Assembly: GCF_006345805.1 (NCBI RefSeq)
Contig: NW_021836129.1
Coordinates: forward strand, 310,001-374,000
From: Octopus sinensis
Taxonomy: Eukaryota
Length of the DNA: 64,000 nt
Direction: 5' to 3'
This document shows, one piece after another, positions 40,714 through 63,381 of this stretch. The notes under the pieces were generated by a model. That model was given only the letters and a program-made list of their open reading frames with translations. It was not told where the DNA came from and searched no databases. Positions within the stretch are counted from its first letter, which is position 1. Each line of letters begins with the position of its first letter. Position numbers and translations under genes: made by a program.

Positions 40714-42504
40714 ATGCACGCTATTGATGATGGGTCCACAGCGGATAAAATATTTTCATCAGTGTACAGCCTGTCCTACAAGTAGAGAACTAACCTAATG
40801 AGTAGTGACTTGATCATCCTCCCCGGCTACATCGACTTTGCGGCAGACCAAGTGGTATGTCTAAAGTGTCATTTCAGAACTTGAAAACCAATTTAACCAA
40901 AAAAATAGTCCTGAATTGCCCATTCGTATCATCCCCCATGGACACGGTGACAGAGTTCCGAATGGCAATCGCCATGGCGGTATTGACTGACCGACATTGG
41001 TAGTTGGAGGGGGGCATAGGCATAATCCACAACAACTGTCTCCCGAGGAACAAGCCAGTCATGTCCGACTAGTCAAATCCTCCAAACAGGGCTTCATTAT
41101 GAACCCAGTTGTCGTCTCCCCCAGCACTACTGTGGCAGAATACAAAATCCTGGTCAATAAACATGGCTTTTCTGGCTTCCCGGTGACACTAATGGACGGT
41201 TGTTGGGCCTGGTGACTCAACGGGACATTGACTTGTGCTGTGTGTCCGACCAGACGAGGATGGAAGTGGTTGCCCTCGACTTGTCACTGCAGGTGATGAC
41301 CCCCAGAGAGTCATTGGTCACTTCTAACGACGGGATCAACCTCCAAGACGCCTACAAGACTCTCCGAAATGTAAAGAAAGGAAAACTGCCAATCGTGGAC
41401 AAAGAGGACTGTCTGGTTGCACTGGTCACCAGAAAAGACATAATAAAAAACTGTGAATTCCCCAACTCAGTGGTGGACCAAAGGTAGTCTGAATATGACT
41501 AATAGAAATCAATTGATGTGTGGAGCCGCCGTGAGCACTCGTGAGTGTGACCGTGAAAGAGTGGGTCTGCTAGTGGAGGCACAAGTGGATGTAATTGTGG
41601 TGGTATGTGGGACTACTTGACCAATGAAGGACTCCTCCCAAGGCAACTCGGTCTTTCAATTAGAAATGGTCAAGTTCATTAAGCAGAACTACCCGCAAGT
41701 GGAGGTAATTGGAGGAAATGGTAAAACATTGTGGCAATAGAACAGTGGTGACTGCCTCCCAGGCCATCAACCTCATCAATGCAGGCGTGGATGGTCTGCG
41801 AGTAGGAATGGGGTCGGGATCTATTTGTATCACCCAGGAAGGTCAGTCACCCACTAATCCCCCAGTCATGGCTGTTGGTCGAGGACAGGCCAGTGCTGTG
41901 TACCACGTCAGTCAGTTGGCCAGACAATTCGGAGTGCCAGTCATTGCCGATGGGGGAGTCCAGTCCCCGGGACACATCGCCAAGGCAATTGCCCTGGGAG
42001 CCTCCACAGGTACCCATTCAGCCACATCCACTAGTCATGATGGGATCCATGTTTGCTGCCACCTCCGAATCCCCCGTGGAGTCCTCCCTCATCAACGACG
42101 TCAAAGTGAGGCCTTATCGCGGAATGGGGTCACTCGATGCCATGGAGTTGACCAAGGATGTCCAGGCTCGATATTTATGGTTGGGGTATTACTCATCGTA
42201 GCCACGGGTCCTCCATTCAAGTGGCTCAGGGGGTGTCCGGCACAGTCGTCGACAAGGGATCCGCCCATATCTTCCTCAAATATCTTTCACAGAGTTTAAA
42301 GCAGAGTCTTCAAGACATGGGAGGACTGTCCATTCCAGTTATACAGTTTGTGATGTCTTTATATTCCAAGTAATGCACTCGCCAGTGGGGATTTACTGTT
42401 TGAAGTGAGGACAATGTCTGCTCAATGTGAGGGCTCTGTCCACGGTCTCTACTCGTATGCTCCCCTCTCTAATCCCCTTTAGATTTGATAAGAAGTTGTA
42501 CTAG
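40714..42504 (+). CDS. IMPDH: Inosine-5'-monophosphate dehydrogenase with CBS subdomain
   Basis: SYN|[22 protein letters not shown]|[28 protein letters not shown] (catalytic Cys), IADGG, YRGMGS, VAQGVSG; at least 10 introns of 22-27 nt; apparent 1-nt errors. Confidence 0.95.
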
Positions 42505-42621: not shown

Positions 42622-45600
42622 ATGGGTGTTGCATTCATCAGGTCATTCCTCGATGATGGAGATATACAAAAATATGGTGTGATTCCCTTATTCCCAATCG
42701 TAGAGTCACTGCCTTATATACTAAGAGTAGTACTGGAGTCGTGCTGTCGAAACTACGATTCAAAACAGATTAAAAGAAATGAAATATTAAAAATAATAAA
42801 TTGGAAGCAAACTCTCCAGTCTTGTCCTACCATTTTGTTTAAGCCTGCCCGAGTAATGCTGAAGGGCTTCACGTAATGAATTATCTAATGAGTGTAGAGC
42901 CATTCCTATAGTGTGTGACATGGCCACTATTCGTGAGTCACTCCACACTCCACTTGTCACACATGTTAAACCACAATGCCAATTAGACATGTTTATTGAC
43001 CATTCAATCCAATCAGAAGTGTATTAATTAATATAATTAAGTAGTGGAGGGAGCCACCTCAAACTGTTTGGAGAGACGTGTCCATTCCACAAGAAGGAAT
43101 GCTTATTGTTTGAGAGTATTTATAACCCCAGGTCAAACCATGCCAGCCAAGAGAACGAATTCAGAAAGCACTACGAGCAATATAGAATTCTCAAAGTAAT
43201 CAATTAGTTAATTAATATTGCTCTTTGTGGGTCATTGATTAGTGGGCGGGTGAGACGTTTGATGACATTGCTGTGGTCCCTCCTGGTCTGGGAGTGCCCC
43301 ACCACTTTAATGTCGAGTTAATGGCCCGTTTTATAATGGAGAAGGACAGCCAGGTGTACCCCGACAGTGTGATTGGGACTGATAGTAACATCTCCATTCT
43401 CAATGGACTGGGAATACTGAGTATTGGTTGGTGGTAGTCTCACTAACTCAGCCACTTGCTCTGCCCAGTCGGAGTGTGCTATATTAGGGCTGGCAATCCA
43501 CATGAGTCTCCTCCAAGTGGTGGGTTGTCGTGTTTACGGACGACTCAGCCCCCACGTCACCTCCACTGACATTGTGTTGGGAATAATTCGAGTCATTAAT
43601 CACTCATTCATTCACAGGCTCTCAAAGATGAACTCAAATCGGACAATTTTGTCGAGTTCTTTGGTCCTGGGGTTTGTCTTCTCTCTGTTAATGAACGAAT
43701 GACTATTGCCAACATGAGCAATGAATTTGCCGCCATTGCTGCCTTTTTCCCGCCAGATGACATACTAATTAAACACGTGGAATCAATTAGTTAATTATTT
43801 ATTTAATTTGCAGAGGGAGGTCATGTGGGTAATAAAATAAAGCAGTACTTCCAATCAGCAGGGTTATTTAGAAGTGAGTGTTGTGGAGATGAAAGATTGG
43901 AATATTCTAAGGTAATTTTAATATACATATGTAGATTATAAATATTAATCTTGGTTTAATTGAACCAATTTGTACTTTCAGAGGGGAGAGGTGTCTTGTC
44001 CCTGAACTGCCCTCATTTATTAAGCAGAAAATAACGAGTACAGACATATCATCTGCCTCCATAATCCACTACACCAATCATACTGTTTCTTCGGTCATCC
44101 TGGCTGCTGGTTTTGTCCTATAAATAATTTGTATAGGGATTATGGCCAGAAATGCAGTCGAAGCTGGTCTTGCTGTAAAACCCAATGTGAAGTGCAGTCT
44201 CCTACCAGGGAACTCAATGAGTGTGTCCTACTTACTTCTGAGTGGCACATATCACTACCTTTGCTCTCTCGGGTTTGTTTATGGTGATATATGCAGGTTT
44301 GTGCTGGTGGGGTACGGATGTAGTGATTGTGTGAGTAATTATGAGTCACTCAACTCGACTGATAATGTGTGGTAGTTTCTAGAACATTCTAGAAGGGTCT
44401 GCTAACATTGGCGGTCACATCAAAGAGTTGTGAGTATTTGAAGCATCAGGATATTTTGCTGGTGTCTCCTTTGTTTGTGGTTGCATATGCTCTCGTGGGG
44501 GATGTCTCGTTTGACTTTTCCTCACAGTCAATTGGTTAGTGTTTAGTATTATGCAAGGTCGACATTGGAAGAGTGGTAGACAATTATTTCTATCAGATAT
44601 ATGGCCTACCAGACAACAGATACAAGTTAATTAATTAGTGTTGATTGCCAATTAGACGAGTATTATTAATGATATCAACCCCACTCTATATCAACAGACT
44701 AAAAAGAAGATACAAGTAATCTCATTGCTGATTGGTAGACTGGCTCAGTCGAGTGGAATAAAATAGACTCAGTGGGACATGCCCTCTTCCAGTGGAATCC
44801 CAGCTCCCCCTCAGTCCTTCCATCCTATATTGTGCTTATATATAATCCTCACTATTAGGACTACACCAGTAATAATAGAATTAAGTCATTATTCAATTCT
44901 CGGGCAATATTGATTGTTGGTGATGATGTCACGTCTGGTTATATTGCACCTGCTGGGAGTATTCCGAGGAATAGTCCTGTCTCACACTTTTTACTTTCTA
45001 CTGGGTTGGGTTATTGTTGTGTATTCAGGCTTGTCCCCCGTGATTTTGGGTCGTATGGGTCACATCGAGGGTCCCACCAAGTTATGGTGAGAGGGATGTT
45101 CTGCAATCCAAAGCTGGAGAGATTATTGAAAGGGAAATGCCAGTTTATTAGCACTGCGGACTACTGTGGGTGTCAAGTAGTGCACTACCCCTCCCTCGAG
45201 TGCCTTCCACTCTGGTCTGCCTGTGCCCGGTATAGCCAGGAGGGAGTGCCACTCATACTCATTGCTGGGCATAATTTCGGGAGTGGCCCACCGAGGGATT
45301 GGACAGCCAGAGGACTAGGAGTGATGGTATAGAGTGAGTACAAGTGTAGGGGATTAAATGTGTCATTGCTGTTCCATGTCCGAATGGGTGAGGTTTGATT
45401 TGATTAGTACTGGGATTGTGCCCCTGTGCTTTGCTGCAGGAACCACATCTGACACTCTGGGGTTGGTTGGGAATGAGTTGTATGAGATTGACTTTCCCTT
45501 TGTGGTTGAGCCTAATTGTATGGTTCGATTGAAAGTAATGGGTGGCCTATTCATTTTAGGTGGACTGTGAAATGGAGTGTTATGTCACACTTGAATGCAG

Positions 45601-45676
45601 AACTGATTTTGAAATAGCAATGTTGAACAATGGAGGGGCATTTCAATATTGCTATCGACAAATTTGTTCTCGATAA
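42622..45676 (+). CDS. ACO1: Cytosolic aconitase/iron regulatory protein homologue, strongly diverged
   Basis: [81 protein letters not shown] and [10 protein letters not shown] colinear with ACO1/IRP1. Confidence 0.9.
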
Positions 45677-51793: not shown

Positions 51794-54700
51794 ATGTTCA
51801 GCCCATGGATAAACAAATCATACCCTCGGGAGGACACACATTTACAAAAGGAGACCATGAATTCATTAATTATAAAACAGCCGGAATAAAAAAAATTTCA
51901 TTTTCATGATGTTCAGCCCATGGATAAACAAATCATACCCTCGGGAGGACACACATTTACAAAAGGAGCCCATGAATTCATTAATTATAAAACAGCCGGA
52001 ATAAAAAAAATTTTCATTTTCATGATGTTCAGCCCATGGATAAACAAATCATACCCTCGGGAGGACACACATTTACAAAAGGAGCCCATGAATTCATTAA
52101 TTATAAAACAGCCGGAATAAAAAAGATTTTCATTTTCATGATGTTCAGCCCAAGATAAACAAATCATACCCTCGGGAGGACACACATTTACAAAAGGAGC
52201 CCATGAATTCATTAATTATAAACAGCCGGAATAAAAAAAAATTTTCATTTTCATGATGTTCAGCCCATGGATAAACAAATCATACCCTCGGGAGGACACA
52301 CATTTACAAAAGCAGCCCATGAATTCATTAATTATAAAACAGCCGGAATAAAAAAAAATTTTCATTTTCATGATGTTCAGCCCATGGATAATCAAATCAT
52401 ACCCTCGGGAGGACACACATTTACAAAAGGAGACCATGAATTCATTAATTATAAAACAGCCGGAATAAAAAAAATTTTCATTTTCATGATGTTCAGCCCA
52501 TGGATAAACAAATCATACCCTCGGGAGGACACACATTTACAAAAGGAGCCCATGAATTCATTAATTATAAAACAGCCGGAATAAAAAAAATTTTCATTTT
52601 CATGATGTTCAGCCCATGGATAAACAAATCATACCCTCGGGAGGACACACATTTACAAAAGGAGCCCATGAATTCATTAATTATAAAACAGCCGGAATAA
52701 AAAAAAATTTCATTTTCATGATGTTCAGCCCATGGATAAACAAATCATACCCTCGGGAGGACACACATTTACAAAAGGAGCCCATGAATTCATTAATTAT
52801 AAAACAGCCGGAATAAAAAAAAATTTTCATTTTCATGATGTTCAGCCCATGGATAAACAAATCATACCCTCGGGAGGACACACATTTACAAAAGGAGCCC
52901 ATGAATTCATTAATTATAAAACAGCCGGAATAAAAAAATTTTCATTTTCATGATGTTCAGCCCATGGATAAACAAATCATACCCTCGGGAGGACACACAT
53001 TTACAAAAGGAGCCCATGAATTCATTAATTATAAAACAGCCGGAATAAAAAAAAAATTTCATTTTCATGATGTTCAGCCCATGGATAAACAAATCATACC
53101 CTCGGGAGGACACACATTTACAAAAGGAGCCCATGAATTCATTAATTATAAAACAGCCGGAATAAAAAAGATTTTCATTTTCATGATGTTCAGCCCAAGA
53201 TAAACAAATCATACCCTCGGGAGGACACACATTTACAAAAGGAGCCCATGAATTCATTAATTATAAAACAGCCGGAATAAAAAAAAATTTTCATTTTCAT
53301 GATGTTCAGCCCATGGATAAACAAATCATACCCTCGGGAGGACACACATTTACAAAAGCAGCCCATGAATTCATTAATTATAAAACAGCCGGAATAAAAA
53401 AAAATTTTCATTTTCATGATGTTCAGCCCATGGATAATCAAATCATACCCTCGGGAGGACACACATTTACAAAAGGAGACCATGAATTCATTAATTATAA
53501 AACAGCCGGAATAAAAAAATTTTCATTTTCATGATGTTCAGCCCATGGATAAACAAATCATACCCTCGGGAGGACACACATTTACAAAAGGAGCCCATGA
53601 ATTCATTAATTATAAAACAGCCGGAATAAAAAAAATTTTCATTTTCATGATGTTCAGCCCATGGATAAACAAATCATACCCTCGGGAGGACACACATTTA
53701 CAAAAGGAGCCCATGAATTCATTAATTATAAAACAGCCGGAATAAAAAAAATTTCATTTTCATGATGTTCAGCCCATGGATAAACAAATCATACCCTCGG
53801 GAGGACACACATTTACAAAAGGAGCCCATGAATTCATTAATTATAAAACAGCCGGAATAAAAAAAAATTTTCATTTTCATGATGTTCAGCCCATGGATAA
53901 ACAAATCATACCCTCGGGAGGACACACATTTACAAAAGGAGCCCATGAATTCATTAATTATAAAACAGCCGGAATAAAAAAAATTTTCATTTTCATGATG
54001 TTCAGCCCAAGATAAACAAATCATACCCTCGGGAGGACACACATTTACAAAAGGAGACCATGAATTCATTAATTATAAAACAGCCGGAATAAAAAAAATT
54101 TTCATTTTCATGATGTTCAGCCCATGGATAAACAAATCATACCCTCGGGAGGACACACATTTACAAAAGGAGCCCATGAATTCATTAATTATAAAACAGC
54201 CGGAATAAAAAAAATTTTCATTTTCATGATGTTCAGCCCATGGATAAACAAATCATACCCTCGGGAGGACACACATTTACAAAAGGAACCCATGAATTCA
54301 TTAATTATAAAACAGCCGGAATAAAAAAAAATTTTCATTTTCATGATGTTCAGCCCATGGATAAACAAATCATACCCTCGGGAGGACACACATTTACAAA
54401 AGGAGCCCATGAATTCATTAATTATAAAACAGCCGGAATAAAAAAGATTTTCATTTTCATGATGTTCAGCCCATGGATAAACAAATCATACCCTCGGGAG
54501 GACACACATTTACAAAAGGAGCCCATGAATTCATTAATTATAAAACAGCCGGAATAAAAAAAATTTTCATTTTCATGATGTTCAGCCCATGGATAAACAA
54601 ATCATACCCTCGGGAGGACACACATTTACAAAAGCAGCCCATGAATTCATTAATTATAAAACAGCCGGAATAAAAAAAAATTTTCATTTTCATGATGTTC

Positions 54701-55331
54701 AGCCCATGGATAAACAAATCATACCCTCGGGAGGACACACATTTACAAAAGGAGCCCATGAATTCATTAATTATAAAACAGCCGGAATAAAAAAAAATTC
54801 CATTTTCATGATGTTCAGCCCATGGATAAACAAATCATACCCTCGGGAGGACACACATTTACAAAAGCAGCCCATGAATTCATTAATTATAAAACAGCCG
54901 GAATAAAAAAAAAATTTCATTTTCATGATGTTCAGCCCATGAATAAACAAATCATACCCTCGGGAGGACACACATTTACAAAAGCAGCCCATGAATTCAT
55001 TAATTATAAAACAGCCGGAATAAAAAAAAATTTTCATTTTCATGATGTTCAGCCCATGGATAAACAAATCATACCCTCGGGAGGACACACATTTACAAAA
55101 GGAGCCCATGAATTCATTAATTATAAAACAGCCGGAATAAAAAAAAAATTTCATTTTCATGATGTTCAGCCCATGGATAAACAAATCATACCCTCGGGAG
55201 GACACACATTTACAAAAGCAGCCCATGAATTCATTAATTACAAAACAGCCGGAATAAAAAAAAATTTCATTTTCATGATGTTCAGCCCATGGATAAACAA
55301 ATCATACCCTCGGGAGGACACATATTTACAA
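51794..55331 (+). repeat. Tandem satellite, 116-bp monomer, ~30.5 copies
   Basis: Monomer atgttcagcccatggataaacaaatcataccctcgggaggacacacatttacaaaaggagcccatgaattcattaattataaaacagccggaataaaaaaaattttcattttcatg; variation mostly in the A/T run. Confidence 0.98.
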
Positions 55332-55581: not shown

Positions 55582-56959
55582 CAGAGCAACCCTGCCTTGT
55601 GCGAACGTTACCCCAATCGATGATGTCACCTTTCTCGGTGGATCCCTGTCCTACACGAAGCTCCAATCCATGCTTTCCGCCAAAGCTGAACACTTCCAAA
55701 GACTTTCTACAAATCTCTCTATCTTGTCCTCGCACACTGCCTTTTTCCTCTTGAAGAACAGCATTCACATGCCGAAACTCATTTTCACCCTCAGGAGCAA
55801 TCCCTGCTTCCTGCATATGGACCTACTCGCCGCATACGACGTAATCCTGAAAAAGACTGCCGAATCCGTCCTCAATGTACACCTCGATGGTCCTGGATGG
55901 GCCCAATGCTCGCTCCCATTGAGATTCGGAGGTGCGGGAATCCGCACTGCATCCGATGTGGCACTTCCGGCATATCTATCCTCCCTTTCGATGTGCAACA
56001 ACCTGGCCTCTGAGATCCTACTCAACTCTTTCGGATCATGCCTGGATGGTGCTTTTTCGGATGGGCTCACTACCTGGGATCGCTCCTTTTCTGAGAGGCC
56101 CGAAGATTTCTCCTCCCAACGTGCCTGGGACTCTATCGCATGCCGAGCGCGTGTGTCTGTGCTCTCGGCAACCCTTGATCAACACCGCCTGGCATGCCTT
56201 CGTGCGGCATCCGCCCCTCACTCTGGTAGCTGGCTGAATGCTCTTCCTCTCTCCAGCATCGGGACGTGGCTAGACGATGCTGCCATACGCATCGGAGTGG
56301 CTCACCGTCTCGGGCTGGATGTTTGTGCAAAACACCGCTGCAGATGCGGTGAGGTCGTTGACGAAAAGGGACTGCACCCACTTTCCTGCAAGAGGAGCGC
56401 AGGCAGGGAACACAGACACAAGGCCCTCAATGAAATCGTGAAGGCCGGTCTCGAAATGGCGGGCCATTCGTGCCTCCTCGAACCGGTCGGACTCGATCGG
56501 GGAGATGGCAAAAGGCCTGACGGGATGACAATATTCCCGTACTCGTCGGAGAAGGCCCTTGTATGGGATGTCACCGTTGTGGATACCTTTTCGAAATCGA
56601 GGATCCATTCTTCTGCGGCAAACCCTTGTTCGGCTGCAAACCACGCCGAAAAGATCAAAATACATAAATATTCTTCGCTCGCGGACCGCTACCGCGTTAC
56701 GGCAATCGCTCTGGAGACCGCTGGAGTTGCAGGAAAGGAGACTGACTCGTTCCTCAAAGAGGTCGGGCAGTCCATCGGGAGAAGGCTCAAGGACTCGAGA
56801 GAGAGCCTCTGGTTCCGCCAGCGCATCGGCCTGGCCATTGTTCGGGGCAACGCACACTGCGTCCTCGCCGCTGGAACTTAACTATTTTCGGTGTTAATTT
56901 TCCAAAAAAAAAAAAATAATTGATTGAAAAAAAAAATAAAAAAAAAAAATAAAAAAAAA
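55582..56959 (+). mobile_element. 5'-truncated CRE-clade non-LTR retrotransposon with poly(A) tail and 12-bp TSD
   Basis: Uninterrupted frame from 55583 to 56881: RT end (TFLGGSL, LPLRFGGAGIR), C-x-C...H...C knuckle, RH motif and GKRPDG...WDVTVVDT endonuclease; TSD aataaaaaagat at 55570-55581 and 56960-56971; empty site at 5266-5277. Confidence 0.93.
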
Positions 56960-62045: not shown

Positions 62046-63381
62046 ATGAGTGTTTCAGTGGTGTGTGACAATGGAACTGGGGTATAGAATGATATATATA
62101 AAAGTATGTAAAATGTGGGTACAACACGGAGAACATCCCTCGACACGTATTCCCAGCAGTAGTAGGATTCCCAGTAATCCGAGCAGACGTGAAGCAGGAC
62201 AGTAGAGTGCGAATAAAAGTAAGAGTGTGTGTGAGTGAAGGACGTGATGGTGGGGTGGGAGGCAGCGGACAACCGTGCATACCTGTCTCTGAAGTACCCA
62301 ATGGAGAACGGGATAATCCGTGACTGGGAGTGCATGACCCACCTGTATGACTACACATTCGGAGTGGACTGCCTCAACCTGGAGTGCAAGGACACACGGA
62401 TAATGCTGACGGAACCCCCCAGCAACCCCCTGAAGAACAGAGAGAAGATGGCGGAGGTACTCCCCGCTGACCACCCCAGCTCATGTTCGACAAGTACAAC
62501 TTCCACAGTATATATGTGGCCATTCAGGCAGTGCTCACTTTGTACGCGCAGGGTAAGGAGGTGTGTGATTGCAGGACTGTTTACTGGGATTGTGTTGGAC
62601 GCAGGTGATGGAGTGAGTCACGTCTGTCCTGTCTATGAAGGGTGTTCTATTCCCAGTGCCATTATGAGACTCAACCTGGCTGGGAGGGATGTCAGTTCTC
62701 GTCTCCTCAAGGTTGGGGGGTCCCCTCACTCTAGCTCGTCCAACTCAGAGGATACAACCTCAACAGTCATGCCGACTTGCAGACTGTTGGAGAAATGAAG
62801 GAACAGTTGTGCTACGTCGCCTATGACATTGCCAAAGAACAGAAACTGGCCACCGACACTACTTTTGTCAGAGATAGCTACACGGTTGGCCTCTCTCCTC
62901 ACTCACAGTTGCCTGATGGAAGGACTATCTCCATCGAGGAGGAACGCTTTATGGCTCCTGAGATCCTCTTCCATCCTCAACTCGTCGATATTGAACAGGG
63001 CGGAGTCCATTCCTTATGCTTCCAGTCCATCAATGTACAGAATGTTCTCGAATGTTCTAGAAATGTGACATCGACGTCAGGACCAGTCTTCTTAAGGAAA
63101 TCAACCTATCCGGAGGCACTACCATGCTCCCCGGATTCCCCTCTCGCCTAGAAAGGGAAATTAAACGTCTCCACTCTGAGAAAGTGGGCACTGCCAATGT
63201 TGAGTTGTCTTGTCATTGGCAGAAGACCCCCATTAACATTAAGGACCCCCCTTATAGGAAGAACTTGGTCTTCCAGGGGGCCGCAGTCCTGGCCGGGGTC
63301 ATTCAGAACAATGACTCCGCCTGGGTCACCCAACAGGAGTATAGAGAGCAGGGAGTCAGGTGTATGGCTAAACTTAAATAA
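62046..63381 (+). CDS. ACTR2: Actin-related protein 2 (spliced)
   Basis: VVCDNGTG|[42 protein letters not shown]|[36 protein letters not shown]. Confidence 0.95.

Follow-up and report, generated by a model that had tools for sequence, protein, structure and literature searches.

The 64,000-nucleotide (nt) stretch analysed here, referred to as the window, is taken from contig NW_021836129.1 (positions 310,001 to 374,000) of the Octopus sinensis assembly GCF_006345805.1. It carries a gene of the ACO1/IRP1 family on its + strand that appears to have lost aconitase activity while its reading frame and fold were maintained. IRP1 is the classic case of a protein that acts either as an enzyme or as an RNA regulator, switching from one to the other via an Fe-S (iron-sulfur) cluster. 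The IRP1-like gene begins with an ATG at 42622 and its TAA stop ends at 45676, exactly the limits given in a preliminary description of the window, and comprises 20 exons and 19 introns:

42622-42676, 42704-42872, 42898-43020, 43042-43195, 43243-43420, 43452-43591, 43618-43789, + strand: exons 1-7
43814-43911, 43935-44109, 44137-44272, 44297-44366, 44393-44534, 44558-44625, 44656-44715, + strand: exons 8-14
44739-44831, 44859-45004, 45029-45326, 45350-45387, 45408-45534, 45560-45676, + strand: exons 15-20

The coding pieces are interrupted every 40-300 nt by AT-rich GT...AG stretches of 20-47 nt, and these introns have intact GT-AG borders in all cases (19/19). Their removal leaves an uninterrupted coding sequence of 2559 nt with a product of 852 residues. 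GC content is 31% in the introns vs 40-48% at the three codon positions, and the coding frame contains no stop, compared with 41 and 75 in the other two frames. No antisense open reading frame (ORF) of at least 80 residues was found over the gene, and no second aconitase copy was found elsewhere in the window.

Family identity and intron architecture

Several lines of evidence place the gene in the aconitase A/IRP family. Pfam matches were obtained for Aconitase (PF00330; 6.9e-68, 230 bits, cut-off 28.7) and Aconitase_C (PF00694; 2.8e-11, 44 bits, cut-off 22.8), and the product has the domain order of this family, namely a catalytic domain followed by a C-terminal swivel domain. The best protein matches are animal IRP1 and IRP2, with 34-35% identity by BLASTP and ~37% over aligned columns, while the best matches in the PDB are IRP2 (6vcd), rabbit IRP1 (3sn2 and 3snp) and human IRP1 (2b3x), with E-values of 1e-154 to 1e-160. 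No relative closer than 35% overall, or 53% over one exon, emerged from a word-indexed search with the full protein, a search with the product of the neighbouring IMPDH gene and an exhaustive phmmer search with exon 17 against 1.84 billion representative proteins.

Very short introns can be used to explain away stops and frameshifts, and the gene model was therefore tested against independent data, using the Takifugu IRP1 locus (L001; 19 coding introns mapped) and, as a second reference, the Danaus IRP1 locus (L002). Thirteen of the 19 introns are identical to those of Takifugu in alignment column and phase. Those at 43790, 44535 and 44832 have the fugu phase and lie 2-3 columns off, in gapped regions, and intron 3 (43021) has the phase of a fugu intron across a lineage-specific insert, bringing the introns common to both genes by position and phase to 16-17 of 19 (13 exact and 3-4 near). 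The Danaus gene has the same basic intron set, with nine exact matches. Ultra-short introns (20-31 nt) thus occur at positions conserved with vertebrates. Two introns, at 44626-44655 and 45388-45407, are lineage-specific, being absent from both fugu and Danaus. Conversely, two fugu introns are missing from the gene, one inside a deleted region and the other just after a 27-nt insert that may be an intron turned coding sequence. Three of the features concerned are as follows:

43421-43451, + strand: intron 5, 31 nt, 45% GC, CTAAC near the 3' end, at a conserved phase-1 position
44626-44655, + strand: intron 13, 30 nt, AT-rich and full of in-frame stops, inserted cleanly into a block that is a single exon in fugu
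45138-45164, + strand: in-frame 27-nt insert encoding CQFISTADY, immediately before the alignment column (MAFFT) of a fugu phase-0 intron, without usable GT-AG

Intron 5 can also be read through (as LVGG, GWGVGG) and was considered as a disguised frameshift; this was rejected, given the conserved phase-1 intron position. As judged from the best matches to animal IRP1/IRP2, the shared intron positions and phases and the intact GT-AG pairs, the locus is an ortholog of animal ACO1/IRP1.

The intron lengths also bear on the origin of the DNA. Among animals, such introns are known solely from dicyemids and myxobolid myxozoans, with 20-27 nt as regular length classes in the two groups (PMC13644364). 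The GC content of the window (36.2%) and its repeat content fit Dicyema japonicum, for which a GC content of 36.7% was reported (PMC6736024). The locus belongs to the genome of an animal parasite with ultra-short introns, probably a dicyemid such as D. japonicum, with a myxobolid myxozoan as the alternative. No description of an aconitase or IRP from dicyemids, orthonectids or myxozoans was found in the literature.

Loss of cluster and catalytic residues

The roles of the residues considered here, including the cluster ligands, the catalytic Ser642 and the substrate arginines, belong to established aconitase enzymology. The product was compared with 120 animal IRP1/IRP2 sequences, from sponge to vertebrates, in a MAFFT alignment. 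Residues are numbered after an 889-residue bird IRP1 (P0024), in which C437, C503, C506, S778 and R780 agree with the human numbering in PMC4184891, the source of the IRP1 cysteine numbering. The motifs below were located from this alignment:

42859-42901, + strand: LKGFTA (canonical LQDFTG; Q86K, D87G), split by intron 2
43375-43392, + strand: GTDSNI (canonical GTDSHT; H207N, with D205 and S206 kept)
44061-44078, + strand: IIHYTN (canonical ITSCTN; S436H, C437Y, with T438 and N439 kept), first Fe-S ligand lost
44310-44339, + strand: C503/C506 motif, both Cys retained
44417-44449, + strand: TSKSCEYLK segment (canonical SGNRNFEGR, SGNRNFEGRVHP; G534K, N535S, R536C, R541H; ~5 residues deleted), covering substrate-binding residues and the RNA-contact segment 534-544 (PMC3048577)
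44931-44960, + strand: TSGYIA segment (canonical TTDHISPAGN; D to G, H to Y, S681A, with P682 kept)
44997-45032, + strand: STGL, with Thr in place of R699
45054-45071, + strand: YGSHRG (R712H, with R713 kept)
45279-45302, + strand: GSGPPRDW (canonical GSGSSRDW; S778P, S779P, with R780, D781 and W782 kept)

All six motif changes listed in the preliminary description are found, each at columns with little or no variation among the references, and R699T is a further loss. Its statement that only the CxxC pair and IDHS survive was too narrow, as D205/S206, N298, E302, T438, N439, R713 and R780-D781-W782 are also kept; together with D125, H126, S127, C503, C506 and P682, these make up the retained residues.

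When compared with active aconitases, one of the three Cys ligands is lost (C437 is Tyr, while C503 and C506 are kept). The catalytic Ser778 (mitochondrial S642) and its neighbour are both Pro, and His207 of the His/Asp pairs is Asn, with D125/H126 and D205/S206 retained. Among the substrate-binding residues, Gln86, Asn535, Arg536, Arg541 and Arg699 have become Lys, Ser, Cys, His and Thr, respectively, leaving only Arg780. A phmmer alignment to pig mitochondrial aconitase gave the same equivalences (C358 to Tyr; C421 and C424 kept; N446/R447/R452 to Ser/Cys/His). The earlier description of the protein as catalytically dead is therefore borne out, with a cluster Cys, the catalytic Ser, His207, Gln86 and three substrate Arg replaced at otherwise invariant columns. 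From its residues, the protein can safely be taken to be neither a normal aconitase nor an Fe-S-switchable IRP1.

Catalytic and cluster residues were lost at about the same rate as other invariant residues (9/19 vs 87/225, p=0.47). This suggests that the catalytic sites are no longer specially protected, as would be expected once catalysis is unselected.

Maintained frame and probable constraint on the fold

Compared with fugu, 18 exon blocks are homologous, of which six have equal length (e.g. 169, 140, 172, 136 and 117 nt), while in 11 the difference in length is divisible by three. Of the 244 columns that are invariant in the references, 148 are kept in the protein, and its match to the family consensus, expressed relative to a sponge outgroup, declines with conservation, from 0.65 at invariant columns to 0.46 at those 90-99% conserved and 0.36 at those 70-90% conserved. 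Together, the conserved introns, the in-frame insertions and deletions, the absence of stops and this retention gradient argue for purifying selection on frame and fold for most of the divergence. The same observations uphold the earlier view of a full-length pseudo-enzyme rather than a decayed pseudogene. On balance, we consider it likely that the locus is a real ACO1 ortholog that is catalytically dead and that was maintained by selection for most of its history.

The overall comparison with animal ACO1/IRP1 shows both close likeness and deep divergence. The likeness extends to family, domain order, the intron set described above, 61% of the family-invariant positions and the residues C503, C506, D125, H126, D205, S206, N298, E302, R713 and R780-W782. 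However, the protein differs in C437Y, S778P/S779P, H207N, Q86K, N535S, R536C, R541H and R699T, and has undergone several larger changes: a deletion of 34 residues in domain 3, an N-terminus shorter by 18 residues, and two insertions of ~28 and 9 residues. It also has three times the usual number of cysteines, with 35 (4.1%) vs a median of 11 (1.4%) in the references, and many of the extra Cys occupy conserved columns that otherwise have Ala, Val, Thr or Tyr.

The deletion falls between P368 and C437. It makes the region as long as that of pig mitochondrial aconitase, to which the phmmer alignment is almost gap-free, and in this alignment the IRP/AcnA-specific segment is absent from the mitochondrial enzyme. 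Judging from these alignments, a surface segment specific to the family seems to have been excised, rather than the region being damaged at random.

Rates of divergence were compared with those of a neighbouring gene for IMPDH:

40726-42504, + strand: intact IMPDH gene with ~13 introns (about 22-31 nt at unambiguous junctions), ending 117 nt before the ATG of the IRP1-like gene

The IMPDH product keeps the catalytic Cys loop and is mildly enriched in Cys (2.1% vs 1.26%). IRP1 sequences are 58-72% identical between animal phyla (69% for sponge vs vertebrate), whereas the IRP1-like protein is ~37% identical to all of them; for IMPDH, the corresponding values are 75% between phyla and 58% for the window gene compared with bilaterian IMPDH. 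Simple Poisson distances give lineage branches of ~0.79 for the IRP1-like gene and ~0.40 for IMPDH, two genes that evolve at similar rates in other animals. By these estimates, once the lineage effect is allowed for, the IRP1-like gene still evolves ~1.5- to 2-fold faster, a rate well short of neutral decay.

RNA-binding residues

The preliminary description also proposed that the protein keeps the RNA-binding pocket, naming (S)PAG, the second Arg of YGSRRG and RDW. This is correct for P682, R713 and R780-D781-W782, but the Ser of (S)PAG is Ala, so five of the six residues of the C8 pocket are kept (S681, P682, R713, R780, D781 and W782; pocket set from PMC4184891). P682, R713, R780, D781 and W782, as well as T438 and N439, are invariant in all 120 references. 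The same seven residues are shared by bacterial and plant aconitases that are not known to bind iron-responsive elements (IREs), and their retention therefore does not argue for RNA binding.

Other residues serve IRE binding only. Mutation of R269, S371, K379 or S681 cuts affinity 8- to >100-fold and leaves catalysis unaffected, according to a passage of PMC4693282 that cites Selezneva 2013. In the terminal loop of the IRE, R269 contacts U17, S371 contacts A15 and K379 contacts G16 (PMC8466369), and segments 436-442 and 534-544 have been called crucial for the interaction (PMC3048577). The protein studied here has Lys in place of R269 and Ala in place of S681. The invariant loop SGPKRPQD(K/R), which provides the S371 and K379 contacts, has been rewritten:

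43962-44012, + strand: replacement loop reading TFRGERC, alignment ambiguous

Two MAFFT runs differ at this loop, with gaps at S371/K379 in one, and T377 and R382 standing in for these residues in the other. Segment 436-442 has changed from SCTNTSN to HYTNHTV, with T438 and N439 kept, and segment 534-544 from GNRNFEGRVHP to KSCEYLKH, which is ~5 residues shorter. The substitutions R269K and S681A and the rewriting of the 371-379 loop and of segment 534-544 all weigh against RNA binding, and the proposal of a retained RNA-binding pocket is not well supported.

IRP1 with the mutation C437S binds IREs constitutively (PMC3048577), and loss of C437 alone would thus be compatible with an RNA-binding conformation. 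This laboratory mutant resembles the present protein in that the same cluster ligand is lost and no Fe-S switch is possible. However, the RNA contacts and the rest of the active site are all intact in the mutant, which is not the case in the present protein. Rfam scans of the 64-kb window, at the gathering threshold as well as at permissive settings, detected neither an IRE nor any other credible RNA, a result that is uninformative for the genome as a whole. Judging from its residues, RNA binding with altered specificity can be suggested only tentatively for this protein, and canonical IRE binding would be quite unlikely.

Relationship to IRP2 and to other aconitases without the catalytic serine

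Among the relatives that have given up catalysis, only IRP2 (IREB2) has been well studied. Like the present protein, it is a non-catalytic member of the family in which Ser778 is replaced, and both have extra sequence with CPFH at the same exon junction. However, IRP2 keeps the three Cys, R269, S371, K/R379, S681 and segment 534-544 (with only R536K), and binds IREs. Furthermore, IRP2 is a vertebrate paralog, whereas the gene studied here is the ACO1 ortholog of an invertebrate with ultra-short introns. The extra sequence is located as follows:

43043-43135, + strand: lineage-specific insert of ~28-31 residues, directly after intron 3, with CPFH at 43079-43090; exon 4 is 84 nt longer than in fugu

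HMMER aligns the CPFH of this insert to that of IRP2 (C201-H204), the proposed heme-regulatory motif of IRP2. The position of the insert, after the IDHS exon, is the junction of the Cys/Pro-rich exon that encodes 73 residues in vertebrate IRP2; the insert shares only GG and CPFH with it and is much shorter (~28-31 vs 73 residues). In IRP2, these residues form a separate exon at this junction (PMC3048577). By rough estimate, the chance of an exact CPFH in the insert is ~1e-5 to 1e-4, and that of any 4-mer shared with the 73-residue domain is ~0.03. An Artemia isoform has an unrelated insert at the same junction, and no CPxH is encoded in the fugu and Danaus IRP1 loci. The match could be due to chance, convergence or an old cassette exon, and should be treated as a lead only. 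A further in-frame intron of 54 nt may also be present at ~43078-43131, which would remove CPFH.

A special affinity to IRP2 was also examined across the whole protein. HMMER scores were 537 bits for IRP2 vs 529 and 519 for IRP1. IRP2-derived states are shared at 11 of 22 positions, compared with 10 of 37 private states of four control lineages, a difference that is not significant (one-sided p=0.07), and most of the shared states are V/I-type swaps. An estimate of this affinity from the protein's own substitution spectrum, although highly significant at first sight (13 observed vs ~3.7 expected), was rejected as too strict, given the values of 27% for the controls and 50% for IRP2 (p=0.07).

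The catalytic Ser has also been replaced in other members of the AcnA/IRP family. Four such proteins (P0361, P0378, P0315 and P0384) were found among 1.84 billion representative proteins, with motifs such as GAARDW and GAVRDW, or S778N/S779T in P0384. The latter also lacks D125, H126 and N298, and is the only one of the four without D125/H126. In contrast to the present protein, the Cys ligands are retained in every one of them that extends over position 437 (the fragment P0315 does not reach 437), and most keep the other residues. Their identity to it is 31-37%, no closer than that of ordinary IRP1. Catalytically dead aconitases may be more widespread than IRP2.

Alternative explanations

Any account of the gene has to deal with a frame problem at 45386-45407, a feature not mentioned in the preliminary description:

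45388-45407, + strand: 20-nt GT-AG intron or 1-nt frameshift site, GTGAGGTTTGATTTGATTAG; lineage-specific; the unspliced frame meets a TGA at 45389-45391

Splicing out GTGAGGTTTGATTTGATTAG restores the frame at the cost of seven residues, and the frame downstream is open to the ancestral stop. Three readings of this site can be proposed: an exonic stretch may have become an intron after a 1-nt deletion, a G run may have been miscounted in the assembly (GGG at 45386-45388), or a fresh frameshift could mark the beginning of decay. The last of these would make the gene a unitary pseudogene in early decay, in which cytosolic aconitase/IRP1 is no longer needed and drifts under relaxed selection, with a 1-nt deletion near 45386-45388 as its first frame-breaking lesion. 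Several observations count in favour of decay and against a gene that is still functional. The block 45350-45534, which lies between the conserved introns at 45327 and 45535, falls a single nucleotide short of the fugu exon (185 vs 186 nt). The position of the putative intron is not conserved, and in the other frame it reads VRFDLIS, which still aligns with the HRSNLVG of IRP1, with tblastn homology continuing through it. The rewritten invariant loops, the N-terminal truncation and the three-fold excess of Cys could reflect relaxed selection, divergence is high, and catalytic residues were lost at the background rate. Nevertheless, the lesion is the only one in 2.5 kb, while the 11 other length changes are in frame, the 852 codons are free of stops, every GT-AG pair is intact, and the open frame extends past the lesion. 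GTGAGG...TTAG would also be an acceptable intron in this gene, whose other introns are 21-47 nt long, with a 21-nt intron at a conserved site; those of IMPDH are of similar size, and introns of 20-27 nt are frequent in genomes of this kind (PMC13644364). Moreover, the gene gained another new intron, at 44626, and a homopolymer error at GGG would look identical to a deletion. We regard early decay as improbable, though deserving of serious weight. It is scarcely credible, on the other hand, that the gene model or assembly is an artefact and that a normal aconitase is encoded by the true mRNA. All that could be adduced for this is the general risk inherent in building models by hand when introns are so short. 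The altered motifs lie inside exons bounded by conserved introns and are flanked by conserved sequence in the same frame, and canonical SCTN, SSRDW, NRNFEG, GTDSH, QDFTG, DHISP and GPKRPQ are absent from every frame of the window, so alternative exons cannot restore them.

Other explanations accept a functional protein and differ in the role assigned to it. The preliminary description favoured a constitutive, canonical IRE-binding protein, an independent analogue of IRP2 that regulates ferritin or transporter mRNAs. The loss of C437, as in the constitutive binder C437S (PMC3048577), is consistent with this, as are the retention of T438, N439, P682, R713, R780, D781 and W782, the conservative nature of R269K and possibly of S371T, the CPFH insert at the IRP2 insert position and the top PDB match to IRP2. 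However, S681A, the shortened and rewritten 371-379 loop and the changes in 534-544 (R536C, R541H) point the other way, the excess of IRP2-type residues is not significant compared with controls, and the lack of an IRE in the window adds little, being uninformative beyond it. Moreover, the kept residues are, as far as is known, those conserved in all AcnA-type aconitases, whether they bind RNA or not, and this explanation is unlikely. A more specific variant, in which the single IRP1 gene of a mesozoan or myxozoan independently turned into an IRP2-type protein, permanently cluster-free, binding RNA and controlled via the CPFH insert rather than an Fe-S switch, is highly doubtful. If true, such a conversion would represent convergence, or a cassette exon at this junction older than vertebrates. 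The protein might instead be a metalloprotein or enzyme with altered chemistry, in which another metal or type of cluster would be bound by C503 and C506 together with His408 (S436H) or another new Cys. GYGCSDC is a well-conserved motif, the His of S436H is adjacent to the lost Cys and could act as a ligand, and the 35 Cys of the protein offer further candidates. However, the protein lacks the catalytic base and five substrate-binding residues, no precedent came to light, and the idea derives purely from residue identity, making it very unlikely.

A probably non-catalytic aconitase fold

The explanation that best accommodates these observations is an ACO1/IRP1 ortholog that became a pseudoenzyme fixed in the cluster-free state, and that would be able neither to isomerise citrate nor to switch in response to iron through an Fe-S cluster. 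Selection would have kept the four-domain fold for most of its history, and the protein probably still has a non-catalytic role. As a tentative guess, this role could involve a ligand bound in the open cleft, most plausibly RNA, which might be contacted through the retained domain-4 pocket (R713, R780, D781 and W782). Specificity would no longer be for the canonical ferritin-type IRE, because the residues that recognise its loop have changed. Any regulation would have to operate by means other than the cluster, such as protein turnover or the CPFH-bearing insert. Taken as a whole, including a currently functional gene, we find this account somewhat more probable than its negation.

The gene would thus be a further non-catalytic aconitase/IRP, for which IRP2 is the precedent. 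Catalysis would then have been lost twice independently in the ACO1 lineage, here more radically, as a cluster ligand has also been removed. The retention of the frame and of ancestral introns in a genome otherwise stripped to essentials suggests that the aconitase fold can persist in a non-enzymatic role. The gene also provides a natural experiment on the importance of individual residues in the absence of catalysis and iron sensing. If the gene were untranscribed or its frame broken, it would instead provide a snapshot of gene loss in a reduced parasite.

Other features of the window

Downstream of the IRP1-like gene, a satellite array was identified, together with several ORFs:

51794-55331: satellite array with a 116-bp unit, 30.5 copies, 97% matches and a higher-order period of 349 bp
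55670-56881, + strand: GC-rich ORF of 403 residues without a Pfam match, overlapped by an antisense ORF of 195 residues
58476-59879, - strand: uninterrupted ORF of 467 residues, a pogo/Tc5-type transposase (DDE_1 and HTH_Tnp_Tc5)
62235-62798, + strand: exon of the actin family (Pfam Actin, 5.6e-26)

The satellite array gives rise to spurious repeat ORFs on both strands. An exact look-up of the transposase in the public contig index found no record of this protein. The GC-rich ORF is possibly a fragment of a retroelement, and the antisense ORF that overlaps the actin-family exon is probably spurious.

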